64,000 nucleotides of DNA from IMG/VR virus record IMGVR_UViG_3300032240_001991, positions 248,001 to 312,000 of that record; one strand, 5' to 3'. The notes beneath the pieces are model-generated. The model ran no database searches. It was given only the letters and a program-made list of their open reading frames with translations, and had not been told where the DNA came from. Positions 16,554 to 64,000 of the stretch are shown one piece after another; position 1 is the first letter of the stretch, and each line of letters opens with the position of its first letter. The translations under genes were made by a program, and so were the position numbers.

Positions 16554-17222
16554 TCAACTTCCACTAGTTAAGCTTTGAATTCTAATCGTATAATCAATTT
16601 GTATTAATCTGTTTAATGCTTTCTGTACAGGATGAAAGATAACGTGCGTTAACAATAATCCTGTATTCTCGCCTGCAGGATTATAACTCTTAAGTCCTAA
16701 TTCATCAAAAACAAAGGTTCCGGATGAATCTGTAACATTAGCATCAAATGCTGGTTGTCCTTGAGGTTCTCCAAAGTCTAGTAAGCAACTTACTAATAGA
16801 TCTGAGTAGTATGTGCCAGCTACGTGTCTTACTTCCATAAAATTTCTTGAAGGATCAAGATCGTAAGGATTATTTGCATCAATAACTTTATAATATGTTT
16901 GATTATATAGAGATGCATTACTACCTACATTATTGGGTGTAAGGTATGTAATAATTCCTGTAGGATCAATTCTACTACCACCGTTGCCAAACGCCATTTC
17001 AGAGATAAAATTTTGACCTATATTACCAACTCCGCTTGCTAATGCGATAGAAAAATTTTCATAATGAATGGCGTTTCTTTTATCTACGTATACTTCTTTG
17101 GTTGTTGGATCAAATATTTTAATATGTCCCTGAAGGCGAATAGACCCTGTTTCATTAGGGTCTTTATTATTTTGACGGTTTTGTGTATTTTCAATCATTT
17201 TAGTACTCTTGATATTATCCAT
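16554..17222 (-). CDS. baseplate/tail structural protein (fibre-attachment type)
   Basis: GHIKIFD, MAFGNGG, FDELGL, THVIFHPVQK, IDYTIRIQ; located between the wedge and fibre genes. Confidence 0.65.
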   Translation of the reverse strand: MDNIKSTKMIENTQNRQNNKDPNETGSIRLQGHIKIFDPTTKEVYVDKRNAIHYENFSIALASGVGNIGQNFISEMAFGNGGSRIDPTGIITYLTPNNVGSNASLYNQTYYKVIDANNPYDLDPSRNFMEVRHVAGTYYSDLLVSCLLDFGEPQGQPAFDANVTDSSGTFVFDELGLKSYNPAGENTGLLLTHVIFHPVQKALNRLIQIDYTIRIQSLTSGS

Positions 17223-23200: not shown

Positions 23201-26200
23201 GTTGTTTTTAATTCTGTTCCAAAATTTAAATTGTTATTTTTTAACGGATTATGAATAGTTTGTACCAATGAATAAGATGTTGCTGTACTTACATATTCGT
23301 AAACATAAACACATCCTGGTCCATAGTTATCGTTAATCAAAAACGGCGACGACGCAAACAAATATCCACCATCGTCAGACATAGAAACTGATGTACCAAA
23401 CTGATCACCTATTGTTCCTGTTGGAGGCGTGATAGTCTGTAATAACGAATATGACGATGTACCGGTTGAATACTGGTAAATGTAAACAACCCCTGTTCCG
23501 GTAGACATTGCAGGATTTGCAATCGCTAAGATAGTACCGTCAATATTTCCTGCTAACGAGCAGTTAACTGTCGATGTTCCTAAAGATATTGGAGGCATTG
23601 GTACCGTAATTGCAGTTGTTGAATTAACTGTTAACGTATAAGGGAACACTACTCCTAATGTAGGAGCAGAAACAACCAATGCCTTCCCACCTGTAGTAAA
23701 TTGTGTTTTAGCTACAAATATATCACTACCGTATCTAGATGCTGTGCTAGTGTTTAACACAGAGAGTGTTTTCTCTTCTCCTGTTGCTGGAATAATAGTT
23801 GAAATTTGTACTCTATCTACTGCAGGTGCACCGGCTACAATAACTTGATATTCAGTGTCGTATGCTAGTCCTTTTCCAAATTCAGTAGGTATAGTGATAA
23901 CGTCAATTCCAGAAGCCACCATATTAAGTGTGTAACTAGTAATTGGATAATGGGTTCCGTTAAGTAACCCTAAAACAAATACTCGACCGTGTCCAGAACT
24001 TGAGAAATAATCCGGAGCGGATATTATAAGCTTATCTGCATCCTCTTGAGTTGCAATATTGTATCCGTATCGTTGACCCGGATGATTTACACCACTAAGT
24101 ATTTCTGTTGAAGTAGAATAGTTATGATTCTTCTTATATACTGTCCACGGAGACCAATCATATGTTGCATCACCGGTATCAGTCCAGATTAGTTCGTTAT
24201 CTGCAAAATCAATTTGATCCTGTAGTGCAACTGTATCATCAAAAGATTTAACTCTTACACTAATAAATTTGAACAACAATGCCTGTGTAGTTGCCGGCGA
24301 AACAGTGGCTAATGTTGAATTCACAGAAAAAGAAGTTAACGAAGGTATTTCAATAATTTCATATATTCCGTCAGTTCCGTTATCTAAACCATAAACTGAA
24401 ACAATGTCTCCTACATTTAATTTATGAAAAATATCTGTATAGAAAGTTAATTTAACAGCAGGGATATCTATGTCTGACCCAATTACTTTAATCTGTTGTT
24501 TTGAGTAACGGTAGACGTCCCAATCTCCATTAGGTTTAAATCCTAACCATACAGTGTTACCATCTTGCAAGTTTCCTGCATTTGCAACATCAAACAAGCT
24601 TTGTTTGTTGTACGCTGTTGCAGTTATGTCATCTGATCTAACATATCCTGCTGTTGGCAATAATAGATTATTATTTTTATATGTAGACGATGTGTATGTT
24701 AAAAATACATTATTAGAAGAATAATCATAATTTTTAATTGTTACATCATTAGGAGTAACGTAAGAGATAACATCATTAGCTGTCTTAGGAGCAACATCAA
24801 CAAACTTAATAATTTGATTATTTTCTATAAAATCAGATTCTCTAAGTGGTAATTCAATTTCGTTATAAGAAATAAAATTGCCGTAAGAGCCTACTCTAAA
24901 TGCCCATTCTTCGTCAAATTCAATTTGACCATTTAAATTATGTATACTTGCTTTAGATAGTTTTGATATTGAATTTGCTGTTCCTTTTTCTCTTATAAAT
25001 CCTTGATAGAATTTATATTGAGCAATAGGATCTACTATAATGTTTGTAAGATAACCTCTTGGTGTATAACCGGTTAAATGTTGGGCCATTTTTTGTTGGC
25101 CAATGTCAAAGTTATCTATATCTAAACTATAAAAATCTTCAAATTGATTAATTTTATAATCAAAATTAGGTAACAACTGCGCAATAGGAGAAGACCCTAA
25201 TAAATTCCATTTTGTGAAATTAAAATTAGATGTTCCTGTAATATTTTCATTTGCAGAATAATATTTTCCAGAATATTTTACAACACTAGAAATATCATAA
25301 TCTTTATTTGCTTGCCAAGCTTCAATAGTTACATCGTCGTAAACAAATCCAGGACTTAAGAAATCACCATTCCAGTCTCCTGTAATGAATCCTGAAATTT
25401 TCATTCTAGCCTGACGATAACCTGTTTGTGTGTCATAGACTACATCTCCAAACATACTTGAATTTGCCATAACAATTGCATGTTCTTTCTGTATGAGATT
25501 TAATCTAGCAAAATATAAACCTGCAGGAGTATCTTCGGCACTTATTTTACAAATGCCATTTTCTCTACTTAAACTAAAGTTTTTTGGAGGAAACGGAGTT
25601 CCGTTTGCTGTTAATAAACTATAATCGTAAAAACTATTAAGTACATTATCAACAACAGCATCTGTAAATTTGTATTGTATTTTTCCTGAAAAAGGACTTA
25701 GTGTAATTACTGAGCCGTTAGACCAATTTTGAGTAGTCCAATATAAAAATTCTTTTCCTGAAAAATTCCAATCTAGTACTTGCTCTAAATCTGAATTATA
25801 TTCGTTAAAAATAAATCCTTGATTAGTTAGATATTTCCCGTATCCAACAATTAAATCGTAAACTTCTTGTGTTGTTGAATATTGTGTTCCGTAAGGAATA
25901 ATCGTTTGATTTTGATCAAAATCTTTAGTGATCGATACCGTTGCTCCGCCTATTGTTGGTAAGTTTGCTAGTTTGATATAAGCAGTAACATCAAAAGAGG
26001 ACCCAGAATTGGTACTAGTTGCAACAGAATAATAAGAATTTTCATACTTTACATACTGACCTGCTTGATAGAATGTATTTTCTGTCCAGGTTAGTACTGG
26101 CGGAGATTTTCCTCCTACTGATATAGATGCGTCGTTATTTCTATGTAAAGGAGCATTTATTGTAAAGAATAGATCTTTTTTATCGTAACCCTTAACTAAA

Positions 26201-29200
26201 AATTTTCCATTTTTCTTTTCAACAATTATACCAGAAATTGAAACAAACTTAACCGGATTACTTACATTAAAATGTAAAGCGTAGTCTTCGTTAGGTAGTA
26301 AAACTCCTGGACTTACTGTATTTGGGCTAACTGAATCTATAGTAATCTCTAACTTATCTTTACTTAAAAATCCACCTGCTTTATAAAACAAATTAAAGTT
26401 AACTAATGATAAATCTTGTTTCAGTGCTGCTAGATAATCTAAAGACCTCTTTTTACCAGATTCAATCACCATCACACTATAACCAGATGAAAGAACAGTA
26501 TTTCCATTACTGTCTATATCACTATTAAGATAAACAATTGAAGGATTTAAAAATAAACTATTTTTACCGTACCTGTATTGTCCATCTACATTTTTAACTA
26601 GTCTAATAGGGTCAAACATTTTTGCAGCGTACGATGCTGGCTTAGATAGTGCTAAAATTATTTGCACTGCATACGGCCATATACTGCTACGTCTCCATGC
26701 AGTTTCAGCAGGACCATGATCTCCAAAAGACCAATCTTGATCTGGATTTAATATATTTTCATTCTCAGCAATACTACCCCAGAATCGTAAGTCAATCAAT
26801 TGACCACTATCATCAACTGGAATTATTTTACTTAACCCTGTTCTAACATATGTAGGATCTACTCCAGCACGTTCTCCGTAACGAATTAGTCCTGCTTCTA
26901 AATCTTCCCATAAGTTTAGGTTTCCAGAAGTATAAGGTGCAGGACCATATTCTGATTCCCACCAAGATGGTTTAATACTAAATCCTAACATTTCCCAAGG
27001 ATGTGTATTAGGGCGATCAGTATCAAAGTAAAATTTGTAGATACCTCTCCAATTTCCAGGAACTACAGAATTAAAAAAGTAATCTTGAGTAGATTTATAG
27101 TTATAAGTTTTATGGTTGTCTACGTTATAGTCAACATTTGACGAATAATCTATTCCGTAACTACTGGTCCATTTAATAAAATCTCCTTGTACAATATTAT
27201 AAATTTTATTATAGGAGTTTTTATTATCTCGAAATACTCCCGGAAGTATGTCATTGATATTAATTAAATCAGGATCATATGTTACTTTTATATTATTGAA
27301 CACTCTTCTTTCGTATTCTAAAAGTGCTAGGTCTCTAAAATCGTAATTGCCAATTGCGGCATTTGCAACTGTTGTATATGCCAGCGTAATACTACCATCG
27401 TGGCCTTGTATTACCATGTGGGCATTTACTGCATATGATTCGTCTTTATAAATCATAGGCACATATTTTGGATACAATCCTAATTTGCTAGGAGTTGGCG
27501 GAACGTAGGATCCTACGGTGGTAATATAATCAACCACCGTTATTATGTCACCCCGTGTTAAAGTTGCCGATATTACAACTACAGGGTCTACCAAATCAAA
27601 AGAATAATCAACTCCGTATACTAACAATGAACCGTTTAGGTATATCAATACTGATCTAGTTGAAAGCTGTGTAATATCAAATGTTGAAATTAAAGGATAT
27701 CTAACATTTCTAGCATCTGTAACTGTGTACTTTCTAGTAACATTATTAGTACCATATCCTAGCATATCACTTTGAGAATACGGAAACGTGTAATTTTTAT
27801 TTTTAATAATAGAACTTAACGCTTGATCTAAAACTCCGCTAGGTGATAAAGACGCATCAGATTGGGTGATAAATTTTATTAAATTTAACTTAAATTGATA
27901 ATAATCATTTGCAGTACTACGTGTTGCATTAATTAAATTATGTTCAATGTCAGTTATAAACAGTTGTGCAAACGACATTGGATTATATGATGTAATCATT
28001 CGTGTTCCGTATTTTGTAATAAACGGAAGACTCTTTAGATTACTTACACCAGGGAACACACCAACAAAATTTGGGTCTCGATTAACCATTGTTTGAACAT
28101 GATCACTTAATTCACTAAGAGTAAATTGAGAAATTTGTTCGTTCAGCGGATTGTTAGATGAATTTAAAGGAAATTCATATATACCGTTTTCGTTTGGTGA
28201 CGAAGCGGTATAACATTTAATTAAAACATTTGTTACACTAGTAAACGGTGTAACAAATTGAACATTTAAATTTGTTTTATCTATGACCAATGTATAATCT
28301 ACATCTAACATTAACTTTACATTATTAGAAAATACTTCTATAGTTAGATCTGTAATTAATGCGGCATTATCAAAAACAGTGATAGGTATTAAATTTCCAG
28401 TTGATACAACTTGAAATTGTTGCACCGGCATCTGATACGGCATTCCTTCTTCCCATACGTTCTTATAAGAATATCCAGTATCCTTATTAATTCGTAAGAA
28501 AGTCTTAGATGTAGAAACATCGGTTACTGTATTAGTACCTAATAGAGAAATATTACTTGTATTGAAATAATTTTCAAACAAATAGGATCCTTCAATCCCA
28601 ACATTTTTATAGTTTAACGGAAACCCTAAAACAGGATCAGCTATACCTGTACCTATTGAATATCCAAATAACTTATTTCCTAAAAAGATTGCATTGTAAT
28701 AAGTTTTATCGCTATAACTATGTCCAGTTTCATCAAATAGGTCAAAAAGTGGTGCTTGGTTTAGTACAGTTCTTTGTTGAGAAAGAACCCATTCTAATCC
28801 ATTAAACCAAAATTCCTTTCCTTGTCCCTTAGTTCCTAATAATATTACTGTACTATTACCAAAAATTGGTTCTATTATCTCGGCTAGATTAATCTTTTCA
28901 ACACCGTTAATTAAGCTTAACCCTACTTGAAATATTTTTCCACGAACTAGTGGATCAGGGTCTGCATTAAAAATAATGCGTTGGCCAGGTTCTAATGCAA
29001 CTCCGTCTACAGTATAACTTGTAGAACCTTCAATACTTGAAAATACATCGCTAGTTACTTGGTCAATTAAATCAACTGGATCTAAGCTGTTATTTCCAAA
29101 ATTGTAGAGTTGTATATCTGCTTCAAATTCAACAATAGGACGTCTTGCTCTTAAATTCTGTAAAAGTGTAGGAGTAACACCATTTGCCATTGCTGAAATT

Positions 29201-30405
29201 TCAATAACATCTTGATGGAACCAACGGTTATATCGAGACCAAGGATTAAGATCTTGGGATGATCTATTAATAGTTACATACTCAGGATCAATTGGTAGAT
29301 TTTTAAAACTGTCAAACGGATACTCGTCAAACGGTTCAACGTCAAAATCGTCATCGTATATTGTTGCAAGATTTTCTGGAGTTTGTAATTTAGCAAAATC
29401 AACTAATTTAATAGCATTGCCTACGCCCTCTACTATAAATTCTTTATTATTATAATATTCAGGTGTTACTTGTCCTGCAAATCTAATTTTTAATCCGTTA
29501 ATAAACTCAATACCGTTAGGGGTATTAGTAGTTGGTGCAGTTTTATACGTAACTTTTCCTAATATTTCCTGTTCTACGTCAATTGAAGAATTTTCTTCAA
29601 TGTCTCTAATTAATATAGTTCCTACAACAACATTTTCATTATTACTTGCGTAATATAAAATTCCCGGTAATGTTTCCGGAACAGAAAAAATTATCTGTCC
29701 TTGCTTAATACCGTTATTAAGTATTCCACTAGACTCAGGTAGTGCATCACTATCGCCTGGTAGATTTGTTGTCTTAATATAAAAATTATGAGAAGAATTT
29801 ACATTAAAGACATACGTTACACCTTTATATAAAGTTAATAGCGGGTTTTCAGTTACTCCGTCAGGTGTAAAAATAAAAAAATTCTTATCTGCTGAATCAG
29901 TTACATTATATGTACTAACCGTAGATTTTTGTAACCCAGTTACTGTTATTGTTTCTGGGCCAGTTGTTAGCCAGTAATACTGACTAAAATTTATAAACTT
30001 ATCCCAGTCAATGTGAGGATTGTAAGAATTAACTTCTGGAGAAAATAGAGAATTTAAATTATCCGTTGACCCGCCTTGTACACTTATTTGATTTACTAGA
30101 TCATCAAGTCCAAGTGCTTTCTTAATTGCACCTGATACCGTTTTAATTGTTAACGCAGGCTGAAATTGATATTTGTCTCTGAGAGAATTTTTAGTGCTGT
30201 TAGCATCGTTTACGTAAACATCTGTTACTGAATTATAAGTAGGTGTTAACTTGCTACCAACATATCCGCTAACACGATTAAGCACCGGCACTTTATATAA
30301 TTGATCAATAGTGCTAGATAAAAATTTAGTATTTTTCTTAGTTTGAAAATATGAAGGTAATAAATTTACCGACTTTCTTTCATTTTTTGAAACGTTATTA
30401 GCCAT
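17215..30405 (-). CDS. giant (4396 aa) baseplate wedge protein, T4 gp7-like position
   Basis: Directly after the gp6-like gene; N-terminal LLPSYFQT; YIEEVKPYHTKIR; G.GY...P repeats; FG-GAP-like repeats; AAGGA SD. Confidence 0.7.
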   Translation of the reverse strand: MANNVSKNERKSVNLLPSYFQTKKNTKFLSSTIDQLYKVPVLNRVSGYVGSKLTPTYNSVTDVYVNDANSTKNSLRDKYQFQPALTIKTVSGAIKKALGLDDLVNQISVQGGSTDNLNSLFSPEVNSYNPHIDWDKFINFSQYYWLTTGPETITVTGLQKSTVSTYNVTDSADKNFFIFTPDGVTENPLLTLYKGVTYVFNVNSSHNFYIKTTNLPGDSDALPESSGILNNGIKQGQIIFSVPETLPGILYYASNNENVVVGTILIRDIEENSSIDVEQEILGKVTYKTAPTTNTPNGIEFINGLKIRFAGQVTPEYYNNKEFIVEGVGNAIKLVDFAKLQTPENLATIYDDDFDVEPFDEYPFDSFKNLPIDPEYVTINRSSQDLNPWSRYNRWFHQDVIEISAMANGVTPTLLQNLRARRPIVEFEADIQLYNFGNNSLDPVDLIDQVTSDVFSSIEGSTSYTVDGVALEPGQRIIFNADPDPLVRGKIFQVGLSLINGVEKINLAEIIEPIFGNSTVILLGTKGQGKEFWFNGLEWVLSQQRTVLNQAPLFDLFDETGHSYSDKTYYNAIFLGNKLFGYSIGTGIADPVLGFPLNYKNVGIEGSYLFENYFNTSNISLLGTNTVTDVSTSKTFLRINKDTGYSYKNVWEEGMPYQMPVQQFQVVSTGNLIPITVFDNAALITDLTIEVFSNNVKLMLDVDYTLVIDKTNLNVQFVTPFTSVTNVLIKCYTASSPNENGIYEFPLNSSNNPLNEQISQFTLSELSDHVQTMVNRDPNFVGVFPGVSNLKSLPFITKYGTRMITSYNPMSFAQLFITDIEHNLINATRSTANDYYQFKLNLIKFITQSDASLSPSGVLDQALSSIIKNKNYTFPYSQSDMLGYGTNNVTRKYTVTDARNVRYPLISTFDITQLSTRSVLIYLNGSLLVYGVDYSFDLVDPVVVISATLTRGDIITVVDYITTVGSYVPPTPSKLGLYPKYVPMIYKDESYAVNAHMVIQGHDGSITLAYTTVANAAIGNYDFRDLALLEYERRVFNNIKVTYDPDLININDILPGVFRDNKNSYNKIYNIVQGDFIKWTSSYGIDYSSNVDYNVDNHKTYNYKSTQDYFFNSVVPGNWRGIYKFYFDTDRPNTHPWEMLGFSIKPSWWESEYGPAPYTSGNLNLWEDLEAGLIRYGERAGVDPTYVRTGLSKIIPVDDSGQLIDLRFWGSIAENENILNPDQDWSFGDHGPAETAWRRSSIWPYAVQIILALSKPASYAAKMFDPIRLVKNVDGQYRYGKNSLFLNPSIVYLNSDIDSNGNTVLSSGYSVMVIESGKKRSLDYLAALKQDLSLVNFNLFYKAGGFLSKDKLEITIDSVSPNTVSPGVLLPNEDYALHFNVSNPVKFVSISGIIVEKKNGKFLVKGYDKKDLFFTINAPLHRNNDASISVGGKSPPVLTWTENTFYQAGQYVKYENSYYSVATSTNSGSSFDVTAYIKLANLPTIGGATVSITKDFDQNQTIIPYGTQYSTTQEVYDLIVGYGKYLTNQGFIFNEYNSDLEQVLDWNFSGKEFLYWTTQNWSNGSVITLSPFSGKIQYKFTDAVVDNVLNSFYDYSLLTANGTPFPPKNFSLSRENGICKISAEDTPAGLYFARLNLIQKEHAIVMANSSMFGDVVYDTQTGYRQARMKISGFITGDWNGDFLSPGFVYDDVTIEAWQANKDYDISSVVKYSGKYYSANENITGTSNFNFTKWNLLGSSPIAQLLPNFDYKINQFEDFYSLDIDNFDIGQQKMAQHLTGYTPRGYLTNIIVDPIAQYKFYQGFIREKGTANSISKLSKASIHNLNGQIEFDEEWAFRVGSYGNFISYNEIELPLRESDFIENNQIIKFVDVAPKTANDVISYVTPNDVTIKNYDYSSNNVFLTYTSSTYKNNNLLLPTAGYVRSDDITATAYNKQSLFDVANAGNLQDGNTVWLGFKPNGDWDVYRYSKQQIKVIGSDIDIPAVKLTFYTDIFHKLNVGDIVSVYGLDNGTDGIYEIIEIPSLTSFSVNSTLATVSPATTQALLFKFISVRVKSFDDTVALQDQIDFADNELIWTDTGDATYDWSPWTVYKKNHNYSTSTEILSGVNHPGQRYGYNIATQEDADKLIISAPDYFSSSGHGRVFVLGLLNGTHYPITSYTLNMVASGIDVITIPTEFGKGLAYDTEYQVIVAGAPAVDRVQISTIIPATGEEKTLSVLNTSTASRYGSDIFVAKTQFTTGGKALVVSAPTLGVVFPYTLTVNSTTAITVPMPPISLGTSTVNCSLAGNIDGTILAIANPAMSTGTGVVYIYQYSTGTSSYSLLQTITPPTGTIGDQFGTSVSMSDDGGYLFASSPFLINDNYGPGCVYVYEYVSTATSYSLVQTIHNPLKNNNLNFGTELKTTVDAKKVIISLSGIQENSLTFNDGTVFDGLSTRFTDYINNSGTVYTYERKNKYFVYATELFDANSLTILNGELYGGNNYGKSIAVNNGNIFIGAPDTLGIISNNFVTLGAVFQYNVIDASQTCWSIFRQQEDLIDLTKIKRSVTVNTESEQLVDYLDIIDPVKGKISGLADQEIRYKTAFDPATYSVGTQGVVVNTKTSWIEDRVGELWWDLSTVKYVWYEQSDLEYRKNSWGTLFPGASIDVYEWVQTEYLPSQWSALADTTDGLSKGISGQPKYPDNSVMSIKQYYNPSTGQATNVYFYWVKNKVLLPNAKGRKIPASTVASLIFDPASYGSKFVSILAPNAIAVANVKNTLVGNQIYLNISKDTLNNSVTRHTEWLLLGEGNSANMPTEMLDKKLLDSLVGRDSLGNLVPDPSLSNRVKYGIEVRPRQGMFVDRNQALRNVIDYVNGVVAGYLITDQVNFKNLNSKREIPDVYSREYDQIVDSYGDLSSIKTADLVQAKLTCSISSTTGTITTINIVNSGTGYAPLLPVTYTGSTATSWAGPLVTVVNDTSDAEIDLVINQYGRVTAATIKNSGKGYLKAPELKVRPYTVIVKTDENSNNRWAKYEWQGKSWVKVFTQDFDTTQYWDYINWVSQDFDSLKPLAETVEETYQLAEITVNNGDYVKVKNQGNGRYIILQKVSSAGDYTDKYNLMVNENGTIKFKDNLWNITNNWYNFDYHFTYDQTLYDQTPEMELINILKAIKEDIFIGSLKVYWNHLFFKAVRYAMSEQKFVDWAFKTAFINVRNLAGTLDQRPVFKFQNSQYYEQYIEEVKPYHTKIRNYQVNYNLLEPSNSYITDFDSPAYYDRDTDQFLTVNPGDELSGVYPWKSWTDNYKLSVGSIIVEKPGAGYTSVPTVEIIPALGDTGSGATAEARISLGKVTGVVVTNGGSGYLQTPSVIIVGGGSTELVTAKAYPVMINGKVRNNTVEMKFDRISSNQQINTSTVTESFICDGETFRFTLGWAAENKKANINITLGGVRVLATDYNIETYRKTSSGFGYSYKKLFSDLVLTSAPAQGKVIQITYNKNINLYSAVDRIYSYYQPSINMPGVDPAQLMTGVEYPAAQKQGLMFDYSTNWGLTPFGQSLYGDDVYYYTTASVISVAVTGTDTLMLDNLAGIYPGLRINTVSTSTPYNKFVDPIVTVVSVNTASQLVTFSTSTISTVGLGTLIEFWEFNMVPGVLDTILDGGDLAYTLASGLNPEDIIVDGEGFISPNISHAPEEMIKGEIHESLGMSVYARDPQTGAPVVSETFGEITQTTQTTVLRLLTVPPTTASAIVSFNNELLVPGVDYEFDLVNSTIVIGTQTTTGLVGVSVIGVGGYDYVSSGYTALSNTSTISVSVGVNAEYNTIYATLNGQELLPSQYTLGQGLLTVTGVNPAITNVLQSWVFFGTNRPYSAVREQSIFNNDPARVEWDLFYPLNDNWSADSQAIVEVDSRILIPPNTSYHLFTGVDLKFSIDPNNSYPPNSFGLSSLDVYVNGLRMIPLTDYVVNSVENKVKFRVGLLQLNDVIAITNHEFSDYYFNESRNTIVVRPSADFTYTKIMRIITINNITVEDGIKKEPLIELETFQGRGSRRYEVSRPIFNNNYVWVTVNRKPLVKGIDFYVDADRVTIVLRDSYPYNPSDIVTIMSMYDTSVGNTIGYRMFRDMLNRTEFLRLSKDSSTVLAEPLYPTDKIITVADAGKLALPNLALKIPGVIFIGGERIEYRSVNENVLGNLTRATLGTGAKSVYAIGTSVIDQGARQNLYLSHTPFREITTVTSIMTATGATSYTISALSLNTTTGFVTATNQITVLYGGTPLRKTGFYQHDITVSYDTPAYTLNRSTVATQYDLPPTTVIGTAYLVTSTNEIWSYTASKSESSTATNGYSFTGVRWVEPQFTLTNVVTVGQWSTATLVLNLPTLSTSTGVRIEIVQRIASTNFYELNNTPLIDDTGKIAQFLRDKQATLPDKYYYG
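17228..17233 (-). promoter_or_regulatory. putative late promoter TAAATA, 5 nt before ATG 17222
   Basis: GATAAATA-TTACT-ATG on the - strand. Confidence 0.5.
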
Positions 30406-50561: not shown

Positions 50562-52292
50562 ATGAGCTGGAAACGTCATTTTACCCCCGTTACATCAGGA
50601 TCAATGAGTCCACTGAGTACTTCTGGTCGAACAAATCCTACCAGAACAAACTACTCGTCGTACTTGCCTGATGTTTATAGCGGACATCCTAACCGTTTAG
50701 AACGATATGCGCAGTACGATACTATGGACATGGATCCTGAAGTTAATGCTGCCTTTGATATTCTTGCAGAATTTTGCACACAAACTAACGAAGAAAACGG
50801 AACACCGTTTCAGGTCTTTTTTAAAGAACAAGCAACTGCAACTGAAGTTAAAATTATCAAAAAGTACATGCAGCAATGGACCAAATTAAACAAGTTTGGT
50901 AATAGAATTTTTAAAATTATTCGCAACACATTTAAGTACGGTGACTGTTTCTTTATCCGTGATCCTGAAACACAATCTTGGTTTTATATTGATCCAAGTA
51001 AGGTTGACAAAATTATTGTTAACGAAAGTGAAGGCAAAGCGCCAGAGCAATATGTTATACGTGACATGAATGTTAATTTTCAAAACTTAACAGTTACGCA
51101 AATTAATCCAAGTAATCAAAATACTACTCCTGGCGGTACAACATATGTTACAGGTGGAGTACATCAGCGAGGTATGGTAGGTGCATATCCGCAGAGTTCT
51201 AGCAGCAGATTTACAATCAATCAGAACCAATGGGCTATTGATGCAAAACATGTTATTCATCTAAGCCTAAGCGAAGGATTAGATAATAACTTTCCGTTTG
51301 GCAACAGCTTAATGGAAACAATTTTTAAAGTTTATAAACAGAAAGAATTACTTGAAGATGCTATCATTATCTATCGTGTACAACGTGCACCTGAGCGTCG
51401 TGTATTTTATATTGACGTAGGTAACATGCCTAGTCATCTAGCAATGAGCTTTGTTGAGCGTGTTAAGAATGAAGTAAATCAACGTCGTATTCCTAGTGTT
51501 ACCGGCGGTGGCCAAAGTGTTATTGATTCGGGATACAATCCGTTAAGCATTAACGAAGATTACTTCTTTCCACAAACTAGCGAAGGACGAGGTAGCAAAG
51601 TAGAAATATTACCGGGTGGCACTAACTTAGGTGAGATTAGCGACTTGTTATTCTTTACACAAAAGTTAATGCGTGCGTTGCGTATTCCTAGCAGCTACTT
51701 ACCAACAGGTGTAGATGATAGCCAAGCAGTGTTTAGTGACGGTAAAGTTGGTACAGCGTATATTCAAGAATTAAGATTTAACAACTATTGCGAACGTCTA
51801 CAAAGCTTATTAAATGATCAATTTGATAGTGAATTTAAGTTATATCTTTATAGCAAGGGTATTAACATAGATCCTAATTTATTTGATGTTAGATTTAATC
51901 CACCTCAAAACTTTGCTTCTCATAGACAAGCAGAAATGGATTCTGCACGAGTTTCAACATATAGTGCTGTTGCTGAAATACCGTATCTCAGCAAAAGATT
52001 TGCATTAAAGCGTTTCTTAGGATTAACAGCAGAAGAGATTGCAGAAAATGAATCATTATGGCGAGAAGAAAACGTTGATAGTGACAGTGCAGGTAGCTCA
52101 AGTGCTCAATCAGATATGAGAACTATGGGCATAACTTCAGCCGGATTAGGCGCAGATGCAAATACATTAGGTCAGGCAGACTTAGGATCAGAAGAAATGC
52201 AAGGAGCCGGAGCTGTACCAGGTGCGCCTCCACCAGCTGCACCCGGTAGCGCGCCTGCAGCACCTGGGGGCAGTGCTCCTACTCCGGTATAA
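50562..52292 (+). CDS. portal protein, T4 gp20-like
   Basis: YKQKELLEDAIIIYRVQRAPERRVFYIDVGNMP, EDYFFP..EGRGSKVEILPGG.NLGEI.D. Confidence 0.95.
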   Translation: MSWKRHFTPVTSGSMSPLSTSGRTNPTRTNYSSYLPDVYSGHPNRLERYAQYDTMDMDPEVNAAFDILAEFCTQTNEENGTPFQVFFKEQATATEVKIIKKYMQQWTKLNKFGNRIFKIIRNTFKYGDCFFIRDPETQSWFYIDPSKVDKIIVNESEGKAPEQYVIRDMNVNFQNLTVTQINPSNQNTTPGGTTYVTGGVHQRGMVGAYPQSSSSRFTINQNQWAIDAKHVIHLSLSEGLDNNFPFGNSLMETIFKVYKQKELLEDAIIIYRVQRAPERRVFYIDVGNMPSHLAMSFVERVKNEVNQRRIPSVTGGGQSVIDSGYNPLSINEDYFFPQTSEGRGSKVEILPGGTNLGEISDLLFFTQKLMRALRIPSSYLPTGVDDSQAVFSDGKVGTAYIQELRFNNYCERLQSLLNDQFDSEFKLYLYSKGINIDPNLFDVRFNPPQNFASHRQAEMDSARVSTYSAVAEIPYLSKRFALKRFLGLTAEEIAENESLWREENVDSDSAGSSSAQSDMRTMGITSAGLGADANTLGQADLGSEEMQGAGAVPGAPPPAAPGSAPAAPGGSAPTPV

Positions 52293-53696: not shown

Positions 53697-54329
53697 ATGA
53701 AAAACTTATCATATCTAAGAGAACACCTAAGCTTTGATCAAGCCCAAGTTGTTCTTGAATCAGACGATAAAGAAGGCAAGAGCCTTTATCTTAAAGGTAT
53801 TGCCATTCAAGGCGGTATTCGCAACGCTAATCAGCGGGTTTATCCAGTTGGTGAAATCGCTAATGCTGTCAAGACTCTTAATGATCAAATACAAAACGGG
53901 TATTCTGTGCTAGGAGAAGTTGATCATCCCGATGACCTAAAAGTAAATTTAGACCGTGTTAGTCACATGATCACAAACATGTGGATGGACGGTCCTAACG
54001 GATATGGGAAGATGAAAATTCTTCCCACTCCAATGGGTAATTTAATTCGTACAATGCTCGAATCAGGTGTGAAGCTCGGAGTTAGTAGTCGTGGTAGCGG
54101 AAACGTTGACGACCGTACAGGCCAAGTAGCTGACTTTGAGATTATTACAGTTGATATCGTTGCCCAACCTAGTGCACCAGGAGCTTATCCTACACCAGTC
54201 TACGAACACCTAATGAACGCAAGAGGTGGTAATAGAGCGGTTAGGGTGGCGCATGAGGTTAAACAAGATCCTAAAGCACAGCAGTACTTAAAAGAGTCGC
54301 TGCTGAAAATAATATCCGGTTTGAAATAA
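53697..54329 (+). CDS. prohead protease, T4 gp21-like
   Basis: NANQRVYP, LGEVDHP, RVSH, TPMG, LGVSSRGSG, DIVAQPSAPGAY. Confidence 0.95.
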   Translation: MKNLSYLREHLSFDQAQVVLESDDKEGKSLYLKGIAIQGGIRNANQRVYPVGEIANAVKTLNDQIQNGYSVLGEVDHPDDLKVNLDRVSHMITNMWMDGPNGYGKMKILPTPMGNLIRTMLESGVKLGVSSRGSGNVDDRTGQVADFEIITVDIVAQPSAPGAYPTPVYEHLMNARGGNRAVRVAHEVKQDPKAQQYLKESLLKIISGLK

Positions 54330-55467: not shown

Positions 55468-56643
55468 ATGTCACAGTTATTAAATGAAAGATGGTCCGAG
55501 ACAAAGGAAGCTCTGCTTGAAGGCCTATCGGGTAATCGCCGCGCTTCAATGCAGGTTTGCTTAGAAAATACACGCCGTCACTTGGCAGAAGCCGCAACAA
55601 GCGGTGCAACTAGCGCAGGCAACGTTGCAACACTTAACCGTGTAATTCTTCCAGTAATTAGACGTGTTATGCCAACAGTTATTGCTAATGAAATCATTGG
55701 CGTTCAGCCAATGACCGGTCCTGTTGGTCAGATCCACACTCTACGTGTTCGTTACGCAGACAGTGGAGACGGAGTAGTAGCAGGTGAAGAAGCACTAAGC
55801 CCATTCAAGATTGCTGCTGCTTATTCTGGTAACAATGTGGATTCAAATCCAAAGGCTGCTTCAACAAGCAACTTAGAAGGTGTACCAGGTAAGAGAATGA
55901 GCATCCAGATCCTCAAAGCTCCAGTAGAAGCTAAGAGCCGCAAGCTATCAGCTCGTTGGACATTTGAGGCTGCACAGGATGCACAGGCTCAGCAGGGCAT
56001 TGACATCGAAGCAGAAATCATGGCAGCACTAGCTCAGGAAATCACAGTTGAAATTGACCAAGAAATCCTAGCTTCACTACGTGGTCTAGCTTCAGTAGAA
56101 GAAACATATGACCAGGCACTAGTTTCTGGTACAGCAACATTCGTCGGTGACGAACATGCTGCACTAGCAATTCAGATCAACCGCGTCAGCAACCTAATTG
56201 CACAGCGTACACGTCGTGGCGCAGGCAACTGGGCTGTAGTTTCTAACCAGGCTCTAACAATTCTTCAGAGCGCAACAACAAGTGCATTCGCACGTACCAC
56301 AGAAGGTACATTTGAAGCACCAACAAACACTAAGTTCGTTGGTACACTAAACGGCGCTATGAAGATCTATGTTGACAGCTACAAGGCTGATACAGACAAC
56401 AACAACCAGGTTCTAATTGGATATAAGGGTGGAAGCGAAGCTGATGCACCAGCATTCTACTGCCCATACATCCCGCTAATGAGCTCAGGTGTTGTACTAG
56501 ATCCAACCACATTCGAGCCAGTCGTAGGCTTCCTAACACGCTACGGTTATGTTGAACTCAGCAACACCGCAAGCAGCTTAGGTAACGCTGCCGACTACCT
56601 CGGTAAGGTTGCAATCAACAACGCAACAGTAAGCTTCAAGTAA
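55468..56643 (+). CDS. major capsid protein, T4 gp23-like
   Basis: PVIRRVMP..IA.EIIGVQPMTGPVGQI..LR, KSRKL.A.WT.E.AQD, EI..EIDQEI, FYCPYIPL, DP.TFEP..G..TRYG. Confidence 0.97.
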   Translation: MSQLLNERWSETKEALLEGLSGNRRASMQVCLENTRRHLAEAATSGATSAGNVATLNRVILPVIRRVMPTVIANEIIGVQPMTGPVGQIHTLRVRYADSGDGVVAGEEALSPFKIAAAYSGNNVDSNPKAASTSNLEGVPGKRMSIQILKAPVEAKSRKLSARWTFEAAQDAQAQQGIDIEAEIMAALAQEITVEIDQEILASLRGLASVEETYDQALVSGTATFVGDEHAALAIQINRVSNLIAQRTRRGAGNWAVVSNQALTILQSATTSAFARTTEGTFEAPTNTKFVGTLNGAMKIYVDSYKADTDNNNQVLIGYKGGSEADAPAFYCPYIPLMSSGVVLDPTTFEPVVGFLTRYGYVELSNTASSLGNAADYLGKVAINNATVSFK

Positions 56644-59647: not shown

Positions 59648-60474
59648 AATATATAAAGAAACTTGCTCTTTATACTAAGAGCCCAATGAACGATAGATTA
59701 TCTGTTTTAGACGATAATCGAATTGTTACGACTAGTAAAACTACAATGCAACTTCCTGCTGGAGTTAAGACAGATCGTCCTTCTACAGATTTGTTAACGA
59801 CAGGCACCATTAGGTACAATTATTCTCTTAGAGAGTTTGAAGTTTATAATCCTGAGCCATATAATACAGGTGCAAGTAACACTAAATGGGAAATTATAAG
59901 AACAGTTCGACAAGCAACAATTACTCGTCAAACATTAGGCTACGGTACATATGAAGACACTATTTTTGGACCGTTAGCTTACAACGTTGATGTTAATAAA
60001 CCACAAAATGTTTTTGTATTTGTAGAAAATGTATATCAACTTCCAGTTACTGACTACACGCTGATACAAGATCCTGCAAGTTCAACTTCAACCGTGGCAC
60101 TAACAACTAGTAGTGGTGTTACAACTCTTTATCTTAACACATTAACTAACGTTGATGTTGGCATTGACGGACACTGGAGAACAATCAGTGCGCCAAGTGG
60201 AATACAAGTTGGCACAACCGTTACCAATGTTTCAAATGTGTGGAATAATATTTTTTACGGATATCCTATAGAAATAAGCTTACCAACCACTGGATCAATA
60301 GGACAAGGAACCATAGTGTCTTTTGATTACCAAGCTGGCGTGTATATTCAATTTACACCTGGTGGATTAGGTGCTCCTTTCATGAAACCAGTAACAGCAT
60401 TGCTTGGATTTGATGGTTATTTCCCTGCCGGTCCTTACGGTACATCTTGGGAAGTTGACGGTAATACACCCTAA
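59644..60474 (+). CDS. virion structural protein
   Basis: LP.G....RP, G.IRYN....FEVY, VFVENVYQ.P..DYTL. Confidence 0.7.
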   Translation: MKYIKKLALYTKSPMNDRLSVLDDNRIVTTSKTTMQLPAGVKTDRPSTDLLTTGTIRYNYSLREFEVYNPEPYNTGASNTKWEIIRTVRQATITRQTLGYGTYEDTIFGPLAYNVDVNKPQNVFVFVENVYQLPVTDYTLIQDPASSTSTVALTTSSGVTTLYLNTLTNVDVGIDGHWRTISAPSGIQVGTTVTNVSNVWNNIFYGYPIEISLPTTGSIGQGTIVSFDYQAGVYIQFTPGGLGAPFMKPVTALLGFDGYFPAGPYGTSWEVDGNTP

Positions 60475-60498
60475 CTGATCTCTTTACTCAAACAGTAA

Positions 60499-60597
60499 TA
60501 AATAGTATCGATACTGAAGAAATTCAGTAGGAACATACTGTGGTAAACCCGCAATGTAAGGTGGTTGCCCGTGTAACACGGTGTATGAGGAGTGTCA
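60499..60597 (+). promoter_or_regulatory. late promoter plus candidate structured 5' leader RNA
   Basis: TAAATA 60499-60504; GAAA-tetraloop hairpin 60512-60529; three-way junction closed by CAUAC/GUAUG abutting SD GAGGAG. Confidence 0.55.
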
Positions 60598-63500
60598 ATG
60601 GCCATCGGTCGAATCTCAGGTCCGCTATTAGCTAAAAATCTTTTAAGAGATGGCATAGACCTTGCATTTGAAACAGATTTATTATACTTAGATGTAGCCA
60701 ATGGGCGCATCGGTGTAAGAAAAAATAATCCTTCGTACGAACTTGATGTTAACGGTACTATCAATGCTAAAAATTTAAGAGTAGTATATACCGGACCAGG
60801 CAGCGGGAAAGCAACGCTTGGCAAGTTAGAAATTACATCAGGCACTATTACTACTACAGTTGGCCCAATAAACATTCAACCAAGTGGTAATGAAACGATC
60901 AATCTTGTTGGCGACACAACTGTTACCGGAAATCTTCACGCTACTGGAAATATAACAGCTGATGGTAATATTACTTTAGGAAATAATACCGCAACTGACG
61001 TTGTTATATTTGAATCTGAAATTGGATCCTCTTTAATACCGGCAGCAGATCAACAATATTCGTTAGGTAGTCAAGAACGTGCATGGCTTGATGCCTATGT
61101 GTCAACATTAGTTGCAAATCAACTTTCAAGCACCAGCACATTAAACATTAACTCTGGTGCCAATCTTGTACAGATTAATTCAGACCTTAAGGTAAATGGA
61201 CAAAATCCCTTAGGCACCGCTCCAGTTATCACTAATGTCTTGTTTGTTACAATGGACGGTAATGACACTAATGATGGACGAGCAGCTGACGCAAGTCGTG
61301 CCTGTAAAACAATTTCAGGAGCAATACGTAGTCCTTATTATCGACCAGGTACTTTAATTAAAGTATATAGCGGACATTATTTAGAGAATAATCCGTTATT
61401 ATTACAACCAAATACAGCAGTTGTAGGAGACGATCTAAGAACAACATCTATTGAACCAATTAATAAGACACAGGACTTATTCCATGTTCAAAGCGGTTGC
61501 TATATTGCGCAAGTGCAATTTTATAATGGACGCAGCGGATTATTACCCGGACCATATGTTAACGGTACTAATAGAGGTGCATATTGCACAGCATTTCCTC
61601 CACAAGTAGGAGGAAATAAGATTGACGTTTATCAATCACCTTACATACAGAACTGTACTAATCAAAGCGGTCCGTGGTTAGTTGACGGAACAATGTTTGT
61701 ACCTAACCAAACGGTACAAATTCCTCAAGCAGTTGGTACAACAGTATTTGACTCTAACACAACTACCATTGTTGTTACAATAACAACAGGCACAGTTGTT
61801 CCGGGGTTACATGTTATTAGCGGACCCCAAGACGTAGGATTTACTAATGCGAGAACATTATTATTGTCAAATCTTGCATTTATACAAGACCAAACTGTTG
61901 CTTGGGTAAATCATCAGGTAAAAACTAGTAGCACAGTTTACATACCTCAGCTAGCTACCACAACAAATTTTACAAATTTTACATACGATCAAGCTAAATG
62001 TTATCGCGATGTAGGATTAATTTTACAAAATGTAGCCTACGACGCAACTTTTGGCGGAAACGAAAAAGCCGTTGAAGCTGGGTTAGCTTATTGGAACGGC
62101 GTTATTAACTTAATTGAAGGGCAGCAAGGACAAACTACTGCGGCAATTAATTACATCAATACATTAAGTCAAGCAATTATCACAAATACTACTGTAACAA
62201 ATCTATACAGTTCATCAACTGCACAGATTATTAATACAGCGTTAGTGAACGGTGTTATTGCTAGCGAAGAAATTACTAGCGCAATTGGCACTATAATTAC
62301 AATTATCAATGACGGACCTATTGCCGCACCGCCTATCTTTATAAGCTGCGGACCTGAAACGCCGTTAGTTAGCGCAGAACTATTATTACAACAAAATCGT
62401 AAATTCTTGCAAGGCGAAGTTACTGCCTATGTAGATGCAACCTATCCAACATTTGAATACAAGAAAGATTATTGCTATCGTGATGTTGGATTGATTGTTG
62501 ATGCAGTAGCTCAAGACATTATTGTAGGCGGCAACACAAAATCTATTGAAGCAGCATTAAGTTATTATACAGGCGGTAAAGGTGATAGCAGCGTAGCTGA
62601 AACAGCAATAGTCAACAACTTTAATTTAATTAAAAATATTATACAAAATGGTCCATCAGTAGCTCCAGATCCTGTAAGCGGTCCTAATTTAGGGACAGGA
62701 TTTTCTAACGCACAGGATATATTACTTGCTAATATCTTCTTTGTGCAAACAGAAGTTAGCGCATATGTAAGAAGCTTATTTGACAACACATTTAGATTAA
62801 CACAATTACAACAAAATTTATGCTACAGAGACATTGGCACTATACTTACTGCAATTGCTGAAGATACAGCAGCTGGCGGTAATGTTAATACTGTTTACGC
62901 AGGATTACAATATTTTAATGGTTCTGTAAGTGTGCTACCAGGCAATCAAACAGAAAAAACAATTCTCACTTTAAACTATATGCAACAGCTCTGTGTTAAT
63001 ATTATTAAAAATATTCAAAACACAGGGCTGTATCAAGTTTTAATTCCGCAGGTATTTGGAGATTATACCGGTACTGATCAAGCTAACGCAGTTAACGCTA
63101 ATATTGAATTGATCACTGACATTATAACATTGGGACCAACCGTTGTTACATCGTTGTACCCAATCTCTCAATCGATGACAACTGATGTTAGAAACATAAA
63201 TGCATTTAATTTATTAACAGCAAACAAATCTTTTCTTGCTGCAGAATTAACCGGTTGGGTTGACACTACTTTTTCAAAAGGTTTTAATTATAATACAGCA
63301 ACTTGCTATAGAGATACTGGGTTAATTGTTGACAGTTTAGCTTGGGACTTGTTACAACAAGACACTAGTCAATCAATCTTCTCAGGACTTCAATACTATA
63401 ATAAATCAGGATACACTGGTTCAATTAATAAAGAATTGACAACAACTACCGCAGCTATTAACTATGCTAAAGAATTAGCAATGAAGGTAGTTGTCAACAG

Positions 63501-64000
63501 TACAGTAACTAATTTACAAACAGCAACTCTACAGGTATTTAATTTAGTTAATCCTGGATCGCCGGTAACAACTGGTACTGTTGGAACACTGTTCAATACT
63601 GTTACTAACATATTAGTAAATGGCACTGCTGGAGTTACTAATCAAATCATACCTAACAATACAGCATCTGTTGTAACCGGTATTGTTAATGCTTACAATT
63701 TATTACAGGCTAATAAATCCTTTATAGAAGACGAAGTTATTGCTTATGTAGACTTGACTACTGGCGGATTTAGTTATGATCAACCTAAGTGTTATAGAGA
63801 TGTTGGGTTAATTGTTGATAGTTTAGCAGAAGACTTGTTATTCAACGGAAGTAGTCAGAGTAATTTTTCTGGATTACAATATTGGGCACAAGGATCTACA
63901 AGTATCCCAGGAGAACTTAATACAACAACTGCGGCAATTAGTTACGTAAGAGACCTTGCAGTAAAAGTTGTTGTTGGTGATACAAGTGGCACAAGATATC
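60598..64000 (+). CDS. giant virion fibre/structural protein (over 1134 aa, 3' truncated; absent from ORF track) with a beta-helix start and tandem CYRD repeats
   Basis: ATG 60598 after GAGGAG; no stop in this frame in the translated stretches or the ORF track. Sequence includes MAIGRISGPLL..., FVTMDGNDTNDG...KTISGA...GHYLE.NP...VVGDDLR (pectin-lyase-like start), SPYIQNCT, then helical repeats. Confidence 0.85.
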   Translation, partial: MAIGRISGPLLAKNLLRDGIDLAFETDLLYLDVANGRIGVRKNNPSYELDVNGTINAKNLRVVYTGPGSGKATLGKLEITSGTITTTVGPINIQPSGNETINLVGDTTVTGNLHATGNITADGNITLGNNTATDVVIFESEIGSSLIPAADQQYSLGSQERAWLDAYVSTLVANQLSSTSTLNINSGANLVQINSDLKVNGQNPLGTAPVITNVLFVTMDGNDTNDGRAADASRACKTISGAIRSPYYRPGTLIKVYSGHYLENNPLLLQPNTAVVGDDLRTTSIEPINKTQDLFHVQSGCYIAQVQFYNGRSGLLPGPYVNGTNRGAYCTAFPPQVGGNKIDVYQSPYIQNCTNQSGPWLVDGTMFVPNQTVQIPQAVGTTVFDSNTTTIVVTITTGTVVPGLHVISGPQDVGFTNARTLLLSNLAFIQDQTVAWVNHQVKTSSTVYIPQLATTTNFTNFTYDQAKCYRDVGLILQNVAYDATFGGNEKAVEAGLAYWNGVINLIEGQQGQTTAAINYINTLSQAIITNTTVTNLYSSSTAQIINTALVNGVIASEEITSAIGTIITIINDGPIAAPPIFISCGPETPLVSAELLLQQNRKFLQGEVTAYVDATYPTFEYKKDYCYRDVGLIVDAVAQDIIVGGNTKSIEAALSYYTGGKGDSSVAETAIVNNFNLIKNIIQNGPSVAPDPVSGPNLGTGFSNAQDILLANIFFVQTEVSAYVRSLFDNTFRLTQLQQNLCYRDIGTILTAIAEDTAAGGNVNTVYAGLQYFNGSVSVLPGNQTEKTILTLNYMQQLCVNIIKNIQNTGLYQVLIPQVFGDYTGTDQANAVNANIELITDIITLGPTVVTSLYPISQSMTTDVRNINAFNLLTANKSFLAAELTGWVDTTFSKGFNYNTATCYRDTGLIVDSLAWDLLQQDTSQSIFSGLQYYNKSGYTGSINKELTTTTAAINYAKELAMKVVVNSTVTNLQTATLQVFNLVNPGSPVTTGTVGTLFNTVTNILVNGTAGVTNQIIPNNTASVVTGIVNAYNLLQANKSFIEDEVIAYVDLTTGGFSYDQPKCYRDVGLIVDSLAEDLLFNGSSQSNFSGLQYWAQGSTSIPGELNTTTAAISYVRDLAVKVVVGDTSGTRY
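61840..64000 (+). repeat. five helical protein repeats with invariant CYRD
   Basis: Cys codons at 61999, 62473, 62821, 63304 and 63790 (spacing 158, 116, 161, 162 aa). Confidence 0.9.

Follow-up and report, generated by a model that had tools for sequence, protein, structure and literature searches.

A giant fibre gene with phycobiliprotein-like repeats

In the current work, a window of 64,000 nucleotides (the whole stretch of DNA analysed, from the IMG/VR virus record IMGVR_UViG_3300032240_001991, attributed here to an uncultured jumbo phage) was examined for an open reading frame located at its 3' end. Frame 1 is open from position 61840, the point from which the initial annotation had described tandem phycobiliprotein/globin-like repeats, to the end of the window, although the ORF actually begins at an ATG at position 60598 (+) and continues for 1134 codons without a stop (60598..64000). 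Its absence from ORF lists is explained only by the fact that it runs off the window end, and the sequence therefore represents the 5' part of a giant gene. A syntenic relative (protein P0126, encoded at a locus designated L123) is 3590 aa long with 17 CxRD repeats, and aligns with aa 1-1125 of the present protein at 44% identity.

The N-terminal non-repeat region (60598..61803 (+), aa 1-402) has no Pfam match, yet includes a segment at aa ~205-356 that matches tail-fibre families of the PHROG collection, with phrog_5342 (E 1e-48) and phrog_4527 (E 4e-45) being retrieved for the protein. The gene follows portal, protease, scaffold-like and major head genes, and the same order is seen in L123. 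Together with the presence of homologous domains in annotated tail-fibre and baseplate proteins of the cyanophages S-PM2 and P-HM2, this supports the assignment as a virion protein, as the initial annotation had proposed, with presence in particles being given by annotation for relatives rather than shown for this protein.

The remainder of the sequence holds five repeats, each with an invariant C-Y-R-D motif, found at aa 468, 626, 742, 903 and 1065, giving spacings of 158, 116, 161 and 162 aa. From the composition of the protein itself 5e-4 CYRD sites are expected, whereas five are observed. A hidden Markov model (HMM) of the repeat identified five domains in this ORF (i-E 5e-36 to 2e-59, plus a small fragment belonging to the short second repeat) and nothing else in six-frame translations of the window. 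Repeat 1 (61804..62325 (+), CYRD at 61999-62010) was detected with an i-E of 1e-51. Repeat 2 (62332..62667 (+), CYRD at 62473-62484; i-E 5e-36, covering profile positions 17-124 plus 150-177) is a short copy lacking about 25-45 aa between the last two helices. This is followed by repeat 3 (62686..63147 (+), CYRD at 62821-62832; i-E 5e-40), repeat 4 (63139..63663 (+), CYRD at 63304-63315; i-E 2e-59) and repeat 5 (63619..63999 (+), CYRD at 63790-63801; i-E 9e-54, profile positions 6-135), the latter being cut by the window end. The sequence pattern that the initial annotation had noted upstream of the Cys corresponds to the family consensus, A..LL.AN..FIQ.E..AY...F.Y....C.RD.G.I.D....DLL.GGN.

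Sequence profiles relate the repeat to phycocyanin alpha

Profile-based searches were performed in addition to direct ones. A megablast search of the gene against 50,697 phage records gave no match, and a single-sequence phmmer search against PDB sequences returned only weak hits to the CsuA/B pilin (E 0.004) in a Thr/Asn-rich stretch, which were judged spurious. In contrast, when a profile built from the repeat alignment (A1) was searched against 177,635 PDB sequences, 25 of 26 hits at E<=10 were phycocyanin alpha or phycoerythrocyanin chains (best E 0.0067), with the repeat Cys aligned on Cys84 and the alignment spanning phycocyanin residues ~27-104. The phycocyanin-alpha motif KCARDIGYYLRMVTY..GG put forward in the initial annotation matches the PDB and cyanobacterial sequences retrieved in our work. 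Next, hhalign comparison of A1 with 45 cyanobacterial CpcA sequences gave a probability of 93.4% (P 2.5e-7), and comparison with CpcA+CpcB gave 90.6% over 64 columns, while similarity to CpcB alone was weak. In the reciprocal test, a CpcA HMM hit only this ORF among 170 segments of the window (E 1.6e-5, next best 0.25), a CpcA+CpcB HMM gave an E-value of 7e-7, and the CpcA HMM also hit 116 of 138 family representatives at E<=1e-3.

The Pfam phycobiliprotein (PBP) family PF00502 scored 19.6 bits for the window protein and 20.5 bits for repeat 1 alone (E 4.9e-4, profile positions 69-140), just below the cut-off of 22.2 bits. The homologues P0001, P0007, P0010 and P0038 scored 35, 41, 26 and 39 bits, respectively, which is above the cut-off when summed over weak repeats, and about half of the listed homologues carry a precomputed hit, although S-PM2 p091 has none.

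The predicted fold of the repeat is globin-like

An AlphaFold (AF2) model of repeat 1 was obtained with high confidence (pLDDT 93.1, pTM 0.87) and contains six helices. A Foldseek search of this model against the PDB returned PBPs as all of the 50 best matches (probability 0.99-1.00, TM 0.45-0.60, best E 0.011), including the bilin domain of the core-membrane linker ApcE (4xxi_B, rmsd 4.8 Å), which supports, as a prediction, a globin-like all-helical fold (helices A/B, E, F', G, H). A two-repeat model (repeats 3 and 4) reproduced the helix pattern in both repeats, but its pLDDT of 76.6 and pTM of 0.54 leave the relative arrangement of repeats unresolved. ESM Atlas look-alikes of repeat 1 had a recognition value below the useful range, and their RsaA/DUF4214-type neighbours were not informative.

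The resemblance extends to the K-C-x-R-D-[IV]-G sequence on helix E, to the GG(T/N) turn that follows it and to the F-x-Y loop before the Cys, the Cys-x-Arg-Asp being in register with Cys82/84, Arg86 and Asp87 of PBPs. There is, however, no counterpart of the N-terminal X-Y helical hairpin that PBPs use to pair alpha with beta: alignments start at PBP residue ~27-36 and only two short helices precede the B-E loop. An alternation of repeats that would mimic alpha and beta subunits was also sought, as similarity at lag 2 greater than at lag 1, yet no consistent pattern was observed in five long proteins.

Each remote-homology statistic is marginal on its own, and a chance or convergent resemblance of a helical repeat that happens to contain CxRD was therefore considered. 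As five independent tests (the PDB profile search, hhalign, the reciprocal CpcA search, Pfam and the structure model) point to the same family and the same alignment register, and as homologues pass Pfam's own threshold, this possibility is regarded as very unlikely. The chain of PBP-like domains proposed in the initial annotation is thus supported, and homology to PBPs is regarded as highly likely.

Conservation and distribution of the repeat family

The family is large, with 1,554 representative proteins that contain from 2 to about 40 repeats each. In 1,460 domains from 138 representatives, all five conserved residues (Cys, Arg, two Asp and Tyr) are present in 93%, and conservation over 1,470 aligned domains amounts to 95.4% for the Cys, 95.6% for the Arg and 98.7% for the Asp of the motif. 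Cys, Arg and the first Asp are lost together, as one functional site would be: joint loss of Cys and Arg was observed 32 times against 2.7 expected, and that of Cys and Asp 19 times against 0.8 expected, while Asp67 is never lost while Cys is kept. These counts are not phylogenetically independent. The two further conserved residues, Asp and Tyr at +14 and +30 from the Cys, have no PBP counterpart. The Asp at +14 is the most conserved residue of all (99.5%) and is kept even when Cys, Arg and Asp are lost, so that part of the conservation is structural.

Among the 50,697 phage records, the repeat matches only cyanophage or marine-virus records, where it occurs in tail-fibre and baseplate proteins such as S-PM2 p091 and P-HM2 gp7, as well as in the 'short tail fiber' of S-RSM4 and S-CAM phages. 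S-PM2 p091 carries four copies with the motif KC[RK]RD and P-HM2 gp7 carries two (KCARD and KCIRD), and structure matches in BFVD are to these proteins. They share about 25% identity with the present repeats, and have fewer copies embedded among other domains. Furthermore, those phages have a cyanomyovirus head, whereas the head genes of the present phage resemble those of Rak2/GAP32-type jumbo phages of heterotrophs, so that a bilin-rich host is not established. In the records and papers consulted, these cyanophage proteins are not annotated or described as PBP-like, and literature searches aimed at a prior description of PBP-like domains in phage virion proteins found none.

No heme oxygenase, ferredoxin-dependent bilin reductase, CpeT/CpeS or CpcS lyase, or photosystem gene was found among 38 ORFs of the 64-kb window, which covers only a part of a genome of roughly 260 kb or larger, and no heme oxygenase or bilin reductase gene was found within ±10 kb of the relatives at L123 and at a second locus, L122. 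No tRNA genes were found in the window.

Possible function of the repeats

Based on these results, the gene is interpreted as encoding a giant fibre or appendage protein of a jumbo myovirus in which an N-terminal attachment region of about 400 aa is followed by a string of ~160-aa all-helical domains, at least five here and 17 in the syntenic relative. These domains are homologous to the globin-like core of phycobiliproteins and bilin-binding globins, and are closest to phycocyanin alpha. In PBPs and in the bilin biosynthesis-associated globins BBAG-1 and BBAG-3 the Cys of the C-x-R-D site forms the thioether to bilin ring A, and the Arg and Asp hydrogen-bond other parts of the chromophore. 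It is inferred, in the absence of any measured ligand, that each domain takes up a linear tetrapyrrole in the infected cell before assembly, attachment being either self-catalysed, as reported for BBAGs, or made by a lyase such as phage CpeT. The assembled fibre would then carry a row of covalently bound bilins, which may serve as a stiffening cofactor, a pigment or a light sensor for adsorption. An all-helical bead chain is unusual for a phage fibre. This interpretation as a whole is considered somewhat more likely than not, and covalent bilin binding in itself about as likely as not.

CXRD is described as the bilin-binding motif of PBPs and of BBAG-1/-3, the latter being PBP paralogues of heterotrophic bacteria, outside the light-harvesting context, that attach several bilins without a lyase, which shows that a non-cyanobacterial CXRD globin can be a biliprotein (Rockwell et al. 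2023, PMC10151467). BBAGs are described as cellular proteins encoded next to heme oxygenase and FDBR genes. Relative to phycocyanin alpha and other PBPs, the domains reported here are fused head to tail in one chain of thousands of residues, and are encoded by a phage structural gene without phycobilisome context. ApcE likewise embeds a PBP-type domain in a very long multi-domain chain, although it has one such domain followed by linker repeats of a different fold, whereas here the PBP-like domain itself is the repeat.

Alternatively, the fold may have been captured and multiplied only as a compact, stiff helical spacer that lengthens a fibre, with Cys, Arg and Asp being kept for folding or for contacts between domains or chains and no tetrapyrrole being bound. 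The wide variation in repeat number is expected for such a length-setting module, and the strictly conserved Asp at +14, which is not a PBP bilin residue, and the absence of bilin genes among the ORFs of the window are in line with it. However, a spacer has no evident need for exactly the three residues that hold the chromophore in PBPs, at 95-99% over 1,460 diverged domains, nor would it lose them as a set. In addition, most repeats of P0126 have this as their only Cys, so that paired disulfides within a repeat are unlikely. Conservation and coupled loss therefore favour bilin binding, offered in the initial annotation only as a possibility, over a purely structural role, and the latter is possible but considered the less likely of the two. 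It is also conceivable, though improbable, that the same pocket holds heme or another small molecule, or that the Cys reacts with a host-surface molecule during adsorption: globin-fold relatives bind heme, BBAG-2 binds biliverdin without the CXRD motif (PMC10151467), and the additional conserved Asp and Tyr suggest a site that is not identical to that of PBPs. Nevertheless, the sequence and structure matches are to PBPs specifically and not to heme globins, and no globin-type proximal His is among the conserved columns.

A more speculative possibility, which is considered unlikely on present evidence yet is not excluded by it, is that phage particles are biliproteins whose CxRD globin domains, in fibre and baseplate proteins, would be loaded in the infected cell with bilins made by host enzymes or by the phage's own ho1/pebS/pcyA/pcyX, possibly using phage CpeT as lyase, and that the pigmented fibres would act as the light sensor behind the light-dependent adsorption seen in S-PM2 and P-HM1/P-HM2. 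This would explain why phages carry bilin-synthesis genes, including phages of hosts without phycobilisomes. P-HM2 fits the pattern in that it has ho1, pebS and cpeT (PMC3037559, Table 3), does not adsorb in the dark (PMC6628666), and encodes gp7 with its two CxRD domains.

Two open questions in cyanophage biology would become directly testable. The role of phage-encoded bilin synthesis genes and of the CpeT lyase is called 'a mystery' or 'unresolved' (PMC3037559), and that of hemO and FDBR genes in phages of non-photosynthetic hosts 'enigmatic' (PMC11480375), and a phage-encoded protein family with up to ~40 intact CXRD sites per chain is an obvious candidate acceptor. The repeats likewise represent a candidate sensor for light-dependent adsorption. 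Beyond phage biology, this would extend bilin-binding globins to viruses and to an extracellular structural role, and would provide naturally concatenated, possibly self-attaching biliprotein modules for use as fluorescent tags.

The fibre gene and its repeats

Considering that the initial annotation reported five repeats with an invariant C-Y-R-D motif at 61840-64000, the corresponding reading frame was first examined and found to be open from 61840 to the end of the window. When followed upstream, beyond which stops occur in the same frame, the ORF starts at an ATG codon at 60598 and thus comprises 1134 codons in the window without a stop (60598-64000, + strand), its absence from mechanically generated ORF lists being due only to the fact that it runs off the window end. 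A 134-aa ORF on the opposite strand (60471-60875, -) overlaps the end of the upstream gene and the first 90 codons of the fibre gene, and is probably not a gene.

The C-Y-R-D motif occurs five times, at residues 468, 626, 742, 903 and 1065, with spacings of 158, 116, 161 and 162 residues, whereas 5e-4 such sites are expected from the composition of the protein itself. A profile HMM of the repeat detected five domains in this ORF (i-E 5e-36 to 2e-59) and none in any other six-frame segment of the window, thereby confirming the observation. The second copy (62332-62667) is a short version representing a natural deletion variant, with 116 aa to the next Cys instead of ~160, which lacks part of the segment between the last two helices, yet retains CYRD, the Asp located at Cys+14 and the Tyr located at Cys+30.

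Genomic context

Upstream of the fibre gene and on the same strand are located genes for a T4-type portal (50562-52292), the prohead protease (53697-54329), a scaffold-like protein and the major head protein (55468-56643). Elsewhere the window contains baseplate wedge and hub genes, tail-fibre collar domains and a late sigma factor, while an aggregate scan of 38 ORFs, which reports families without specifying the ORF matched, also revealed thymidylate synthase, DHFR, a SegE-type GIY-YIG homing endonuclease, SbcCD-like nuclease subunits, an FkbM-type methyltransferase and a DUF2201 metallopeptidase/VWA protein. In addition, an ORF of 4396 aa (17215-30405, -) matches the virion structural family phrog_10938 (1053 bits) and is devoid of CxRD repeats.

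The major head protein is 68-71% identical to those of jumbo myoviruses of 350-470 kb, such as Vibrio phage 2.275.O, Cronobacter GAP32, Pectobacterium CBB, Xanthomonas XaC1 and Sinorhizobium Phosso. The window is therefore derived from an uncultured jumbo myovirus with a G+C content of 37%.

An ENA metagenome contig of 260,593 bp exhibits the same gene order and encodes at the same place a protein of 3590 aa (here named P0126), which is 44% identical over the first 1125 residues. P0126 contains 17 CxRD repeats, of which 12 are arranged in tandem, followed by a non-repeat insert of ~570 aa (aa ~2360-2780) containing four Cys residues, and then by five further repeats. Therefore, the window gene most likely represents the first third of a protein of similar size. 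On the same contig, genes of 2302 aa and 4458 aa are located just after the repeat protein, so that this phage group encodes several giant virion proteins. The N-terminal ~400 residues and the repeats of the window protein match PHROG tail-fibre families (E 1e-48 and 4e-45). Several homologues (P0007, P0010 and P0038, aa 5-45) start with an Mtd_N (major tropism determinant N-terminal) domain, whereas the N-terminus of the window protein gave no Pfam match at E<=1.

Relationship of the repeat to phycobiliproteins

The relationship of the repeat to phycobiliproteins (PBPs) was assessed by five tests based on different methods, the results of which agree. First, the Pfam family PF00502 (Phycobilisome protein) matches residues 461-532 to profile positions 69-140, with a score of 19.6 bits for the whole protein and 20.5 bits for repeat 1 alone, just under the cut-off of 22.2 bits. 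Homologues P0001, P0007, P0010 and P0038 score 35, 41, 26 and 39 bits, respectively, summed over weak repeats, and thus exceed this cut-off, while about half of the 120 listed homologues carry a precomputed PF00502 hit. Second, a profile was built from the five window repeats together with 113 repeat units that are less than 50% identical to each other (alignment A1), and was searched against all 177,635 distinct PDB sequences. Of the 26 hits obtained at E<=10, 25 are phycocyanin alpha or phycoerythrocyanin chains, the best being 6jpr_A at E 0.0067. The alignment runs from helix B to the GG turn after helix E (phycocyanin residues ~27-104) and places the repeat Cys on Cys84.

Third, cpcBA loci were retrieved from cyanobacterial genomes using a degenerate DNA pattern taken from those alignments, and were compared with alignment A1 by means of hhalign. 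The comparison of A1 with 45 CpcA sequences gives a probability of 93.4% and a P of 2.5e-7, and that with CpcA+CpcB a probability of 90.6% over 64 columns (PBP 78-146), whereas the match to CpcB alone is weak. Fourth, in a reciprocal search, a CpcA HMM applied to the 170 six-frame segments of the window hits only this ORF (E 1.6e-5, next best 0.25), while the CpcA+CpcB HMM gives E 7e-7 with all five repeats aligned around the Cys. The CpcA HMM also hits 116 of 138 family representatives at E<=1e-3.

Finally, an AlphaFold2 model of repeat 1, generated with A1 (which contains no PBP) as its alignment, displays six helices with a pLDDT of 93.1 and a pTM of 0.87. A Foldseek search of the PDB with this predicted structure returned PBPs as all 50 best matches, including phycoerythrin beta, cryptophyte PE545 beta, phycocyanin, phycoerythrocyanin and the ApcE bilin domain, with probabilities of 0.99-1.00 and TM values of 0.45-0.60. 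Each of these remote statistics is modest when considered alone, no Foldseek hit being at or below 1e-3, yet their agreement on one family and one register makes chance or convergence very unlikely. The repeat corresponds to the globin core (helices A/B, E, F', G, H), nothing aligns with the PBP X-Y hairpin, and successive domains are joined by a Pro-containing linker of ~15 residues.

Conservation within the repeat family

A full HMMER scan of 1.84 billion representative proteins identified 1,554 proteins at E<=1e-3 and 756 at E<=1e-30, these proteins reaching 6,382 aa and about 40 matched stretches. In 1,602 domains from the 138 newly retrieved best representatives, conservation is 95.4% for the Cys, 95.6% for the Arg (+2 with respect to the Cys), 98.7% for the Asp (+3), 99.5% for the Asp (+14) and 98.2% for the Tyr (+30). 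The latter two residues are as conserved as the CxRD triad, but have no conserved counterpart in CpcA or CpcB.

Of the 1,460 domains with a residue at all five positions, 93% have all five. Losses are coupled, with 32 joint losses of Cys and Arg observed against 2.7 expected, and 19 joint losses of Cys and Asp (+3) observed against 0.8 expected. Asp (+3) is never lost while Cys is kept, whereas Asp (+14) is retained even in domains that have lost C/R/D. Although these counts are of sequences and not of independent events, Cys, Arg and Asp (+3), and partly the Tyr, thus behave as one functional site, while Asp (+14) appears to be structural.

Distribution among phages

A tblastn search of 50,697 phage records gave 111 matching records for the repeat region and 145 for the whole protein, every one of which is a Synechococcus, Prochlorococcus or 'Cyanophage' isolate or a marine single-virus genome. 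The features under the listed matches are annotated as tail fibre, short tail fibre, baseplate wedge, structural protein or hypothetical protein. The tail fibre protein p091 of S-PM2 (3338 aa) contains four copies with the motif KC[RK]RD (aa 689-1536), while the baseplate wedge protein gp7 of P-HM2 (4454 aa) contains two copies, KCARD and KCIRD (aa 2788-2941 and 3611-3750). Structure matches in BFVD are to these cyanophage proteins and to uncultured Caudovirales proteins. The same domain is thus present in different virion proteins in different phages, namely baseplate wedge gp7, 'short tail fiber' and giant tail fibre, with a copy number ranging from 2 to about 40, and therefore behaves as a mobile structural module.

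None of the many Rak2/GAP32-like isolates has the repeat. Therefore, the window phage combines a head typical of Rak2/GAP32/CBB-type jumbo phages of heterotrophic proteobacteria with a module which, among cultured phages, is otherwise seen only in cyanophages; either this is a jumbo cyanophage or the module has spread beyond cyanophages.

Inferred bilin binding

PBPs use the CXRD motif for chromophore binding, where the Cys is covalently attached to ring A, and Arg and Asp hydrogen-bond the chromophore, while the CXRD-bearing BBAG-1/-3 globins of heterotrophic bacteria have been reported to bind several bilins without lyases (PMC10151467). Given the homology, the conserved register and the conservation pattern, the best-supported reading is that each domain is a bilin-binding globin and that the fibre shaft is a row of such domains, attachment of the bilin presumably occurring in the cytoplasm before assembly. 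This reading is an inference which does not rest on the measurement of a ligand, and is tempered by the absence of any heme oxygenase, bilin reductase or lyase gene in the 64 kb analyzed, by the possibility that the host is not a cyanobacterium, and by the two extra invariant residues, which show that the site is not identical to that of PBPs. The main alternative, i.e. that the repeat acts as a ligand-free helical spacer, explains the variable copy number, but does not explain why exactly the chromophore triad is kept and lost as a unit.

The domain is a homologue of PBP and BBAG globins and, according to this reading, works like them. It is not, however, a phycobiliprotein in the functional sense, since it lacks an X-Y hairpin, an alpha/beta alternation and a phycobilisome context, and is fused in tandem within a virion protein. 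Faint PF00502 hits on such proteins are already recorded by database pipelines, whereas literature searches directed at this question retrieved no description of PBP-like domains in phage structural proteins.

Implications for phage bilin genes and light-dependent adsorption

The role of cyanophage pcyA and pebS has been referred to as 'a mystery' and that of cpeT as 'unresolved' (PMC3037559), while the hemO and FDBR genes in phages of non-photosynthetic hosts have been called 'enigmatic' (PMC11480375). These genes were noted to occur, with one exception, only in myocyanophages (PMC10452541), and all the classified isolates examined here that carry the repeat (for example S-PM2 and P-HM2) are also myocyanophages. 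Light-dependent adsorption is, in the case of S-PM2, independent of host photosynthesis (PMC6628666). Furthermore, P-HM2, the baseplate protein of which contains two CxRD domains, carries ho1, pebS and cpeT (PMC3037559, Table 3). Though these are correlations and not tests, they make a pigment-carrying, possibly light-sensing fibre a concrete and cheaply testable hypothesis.
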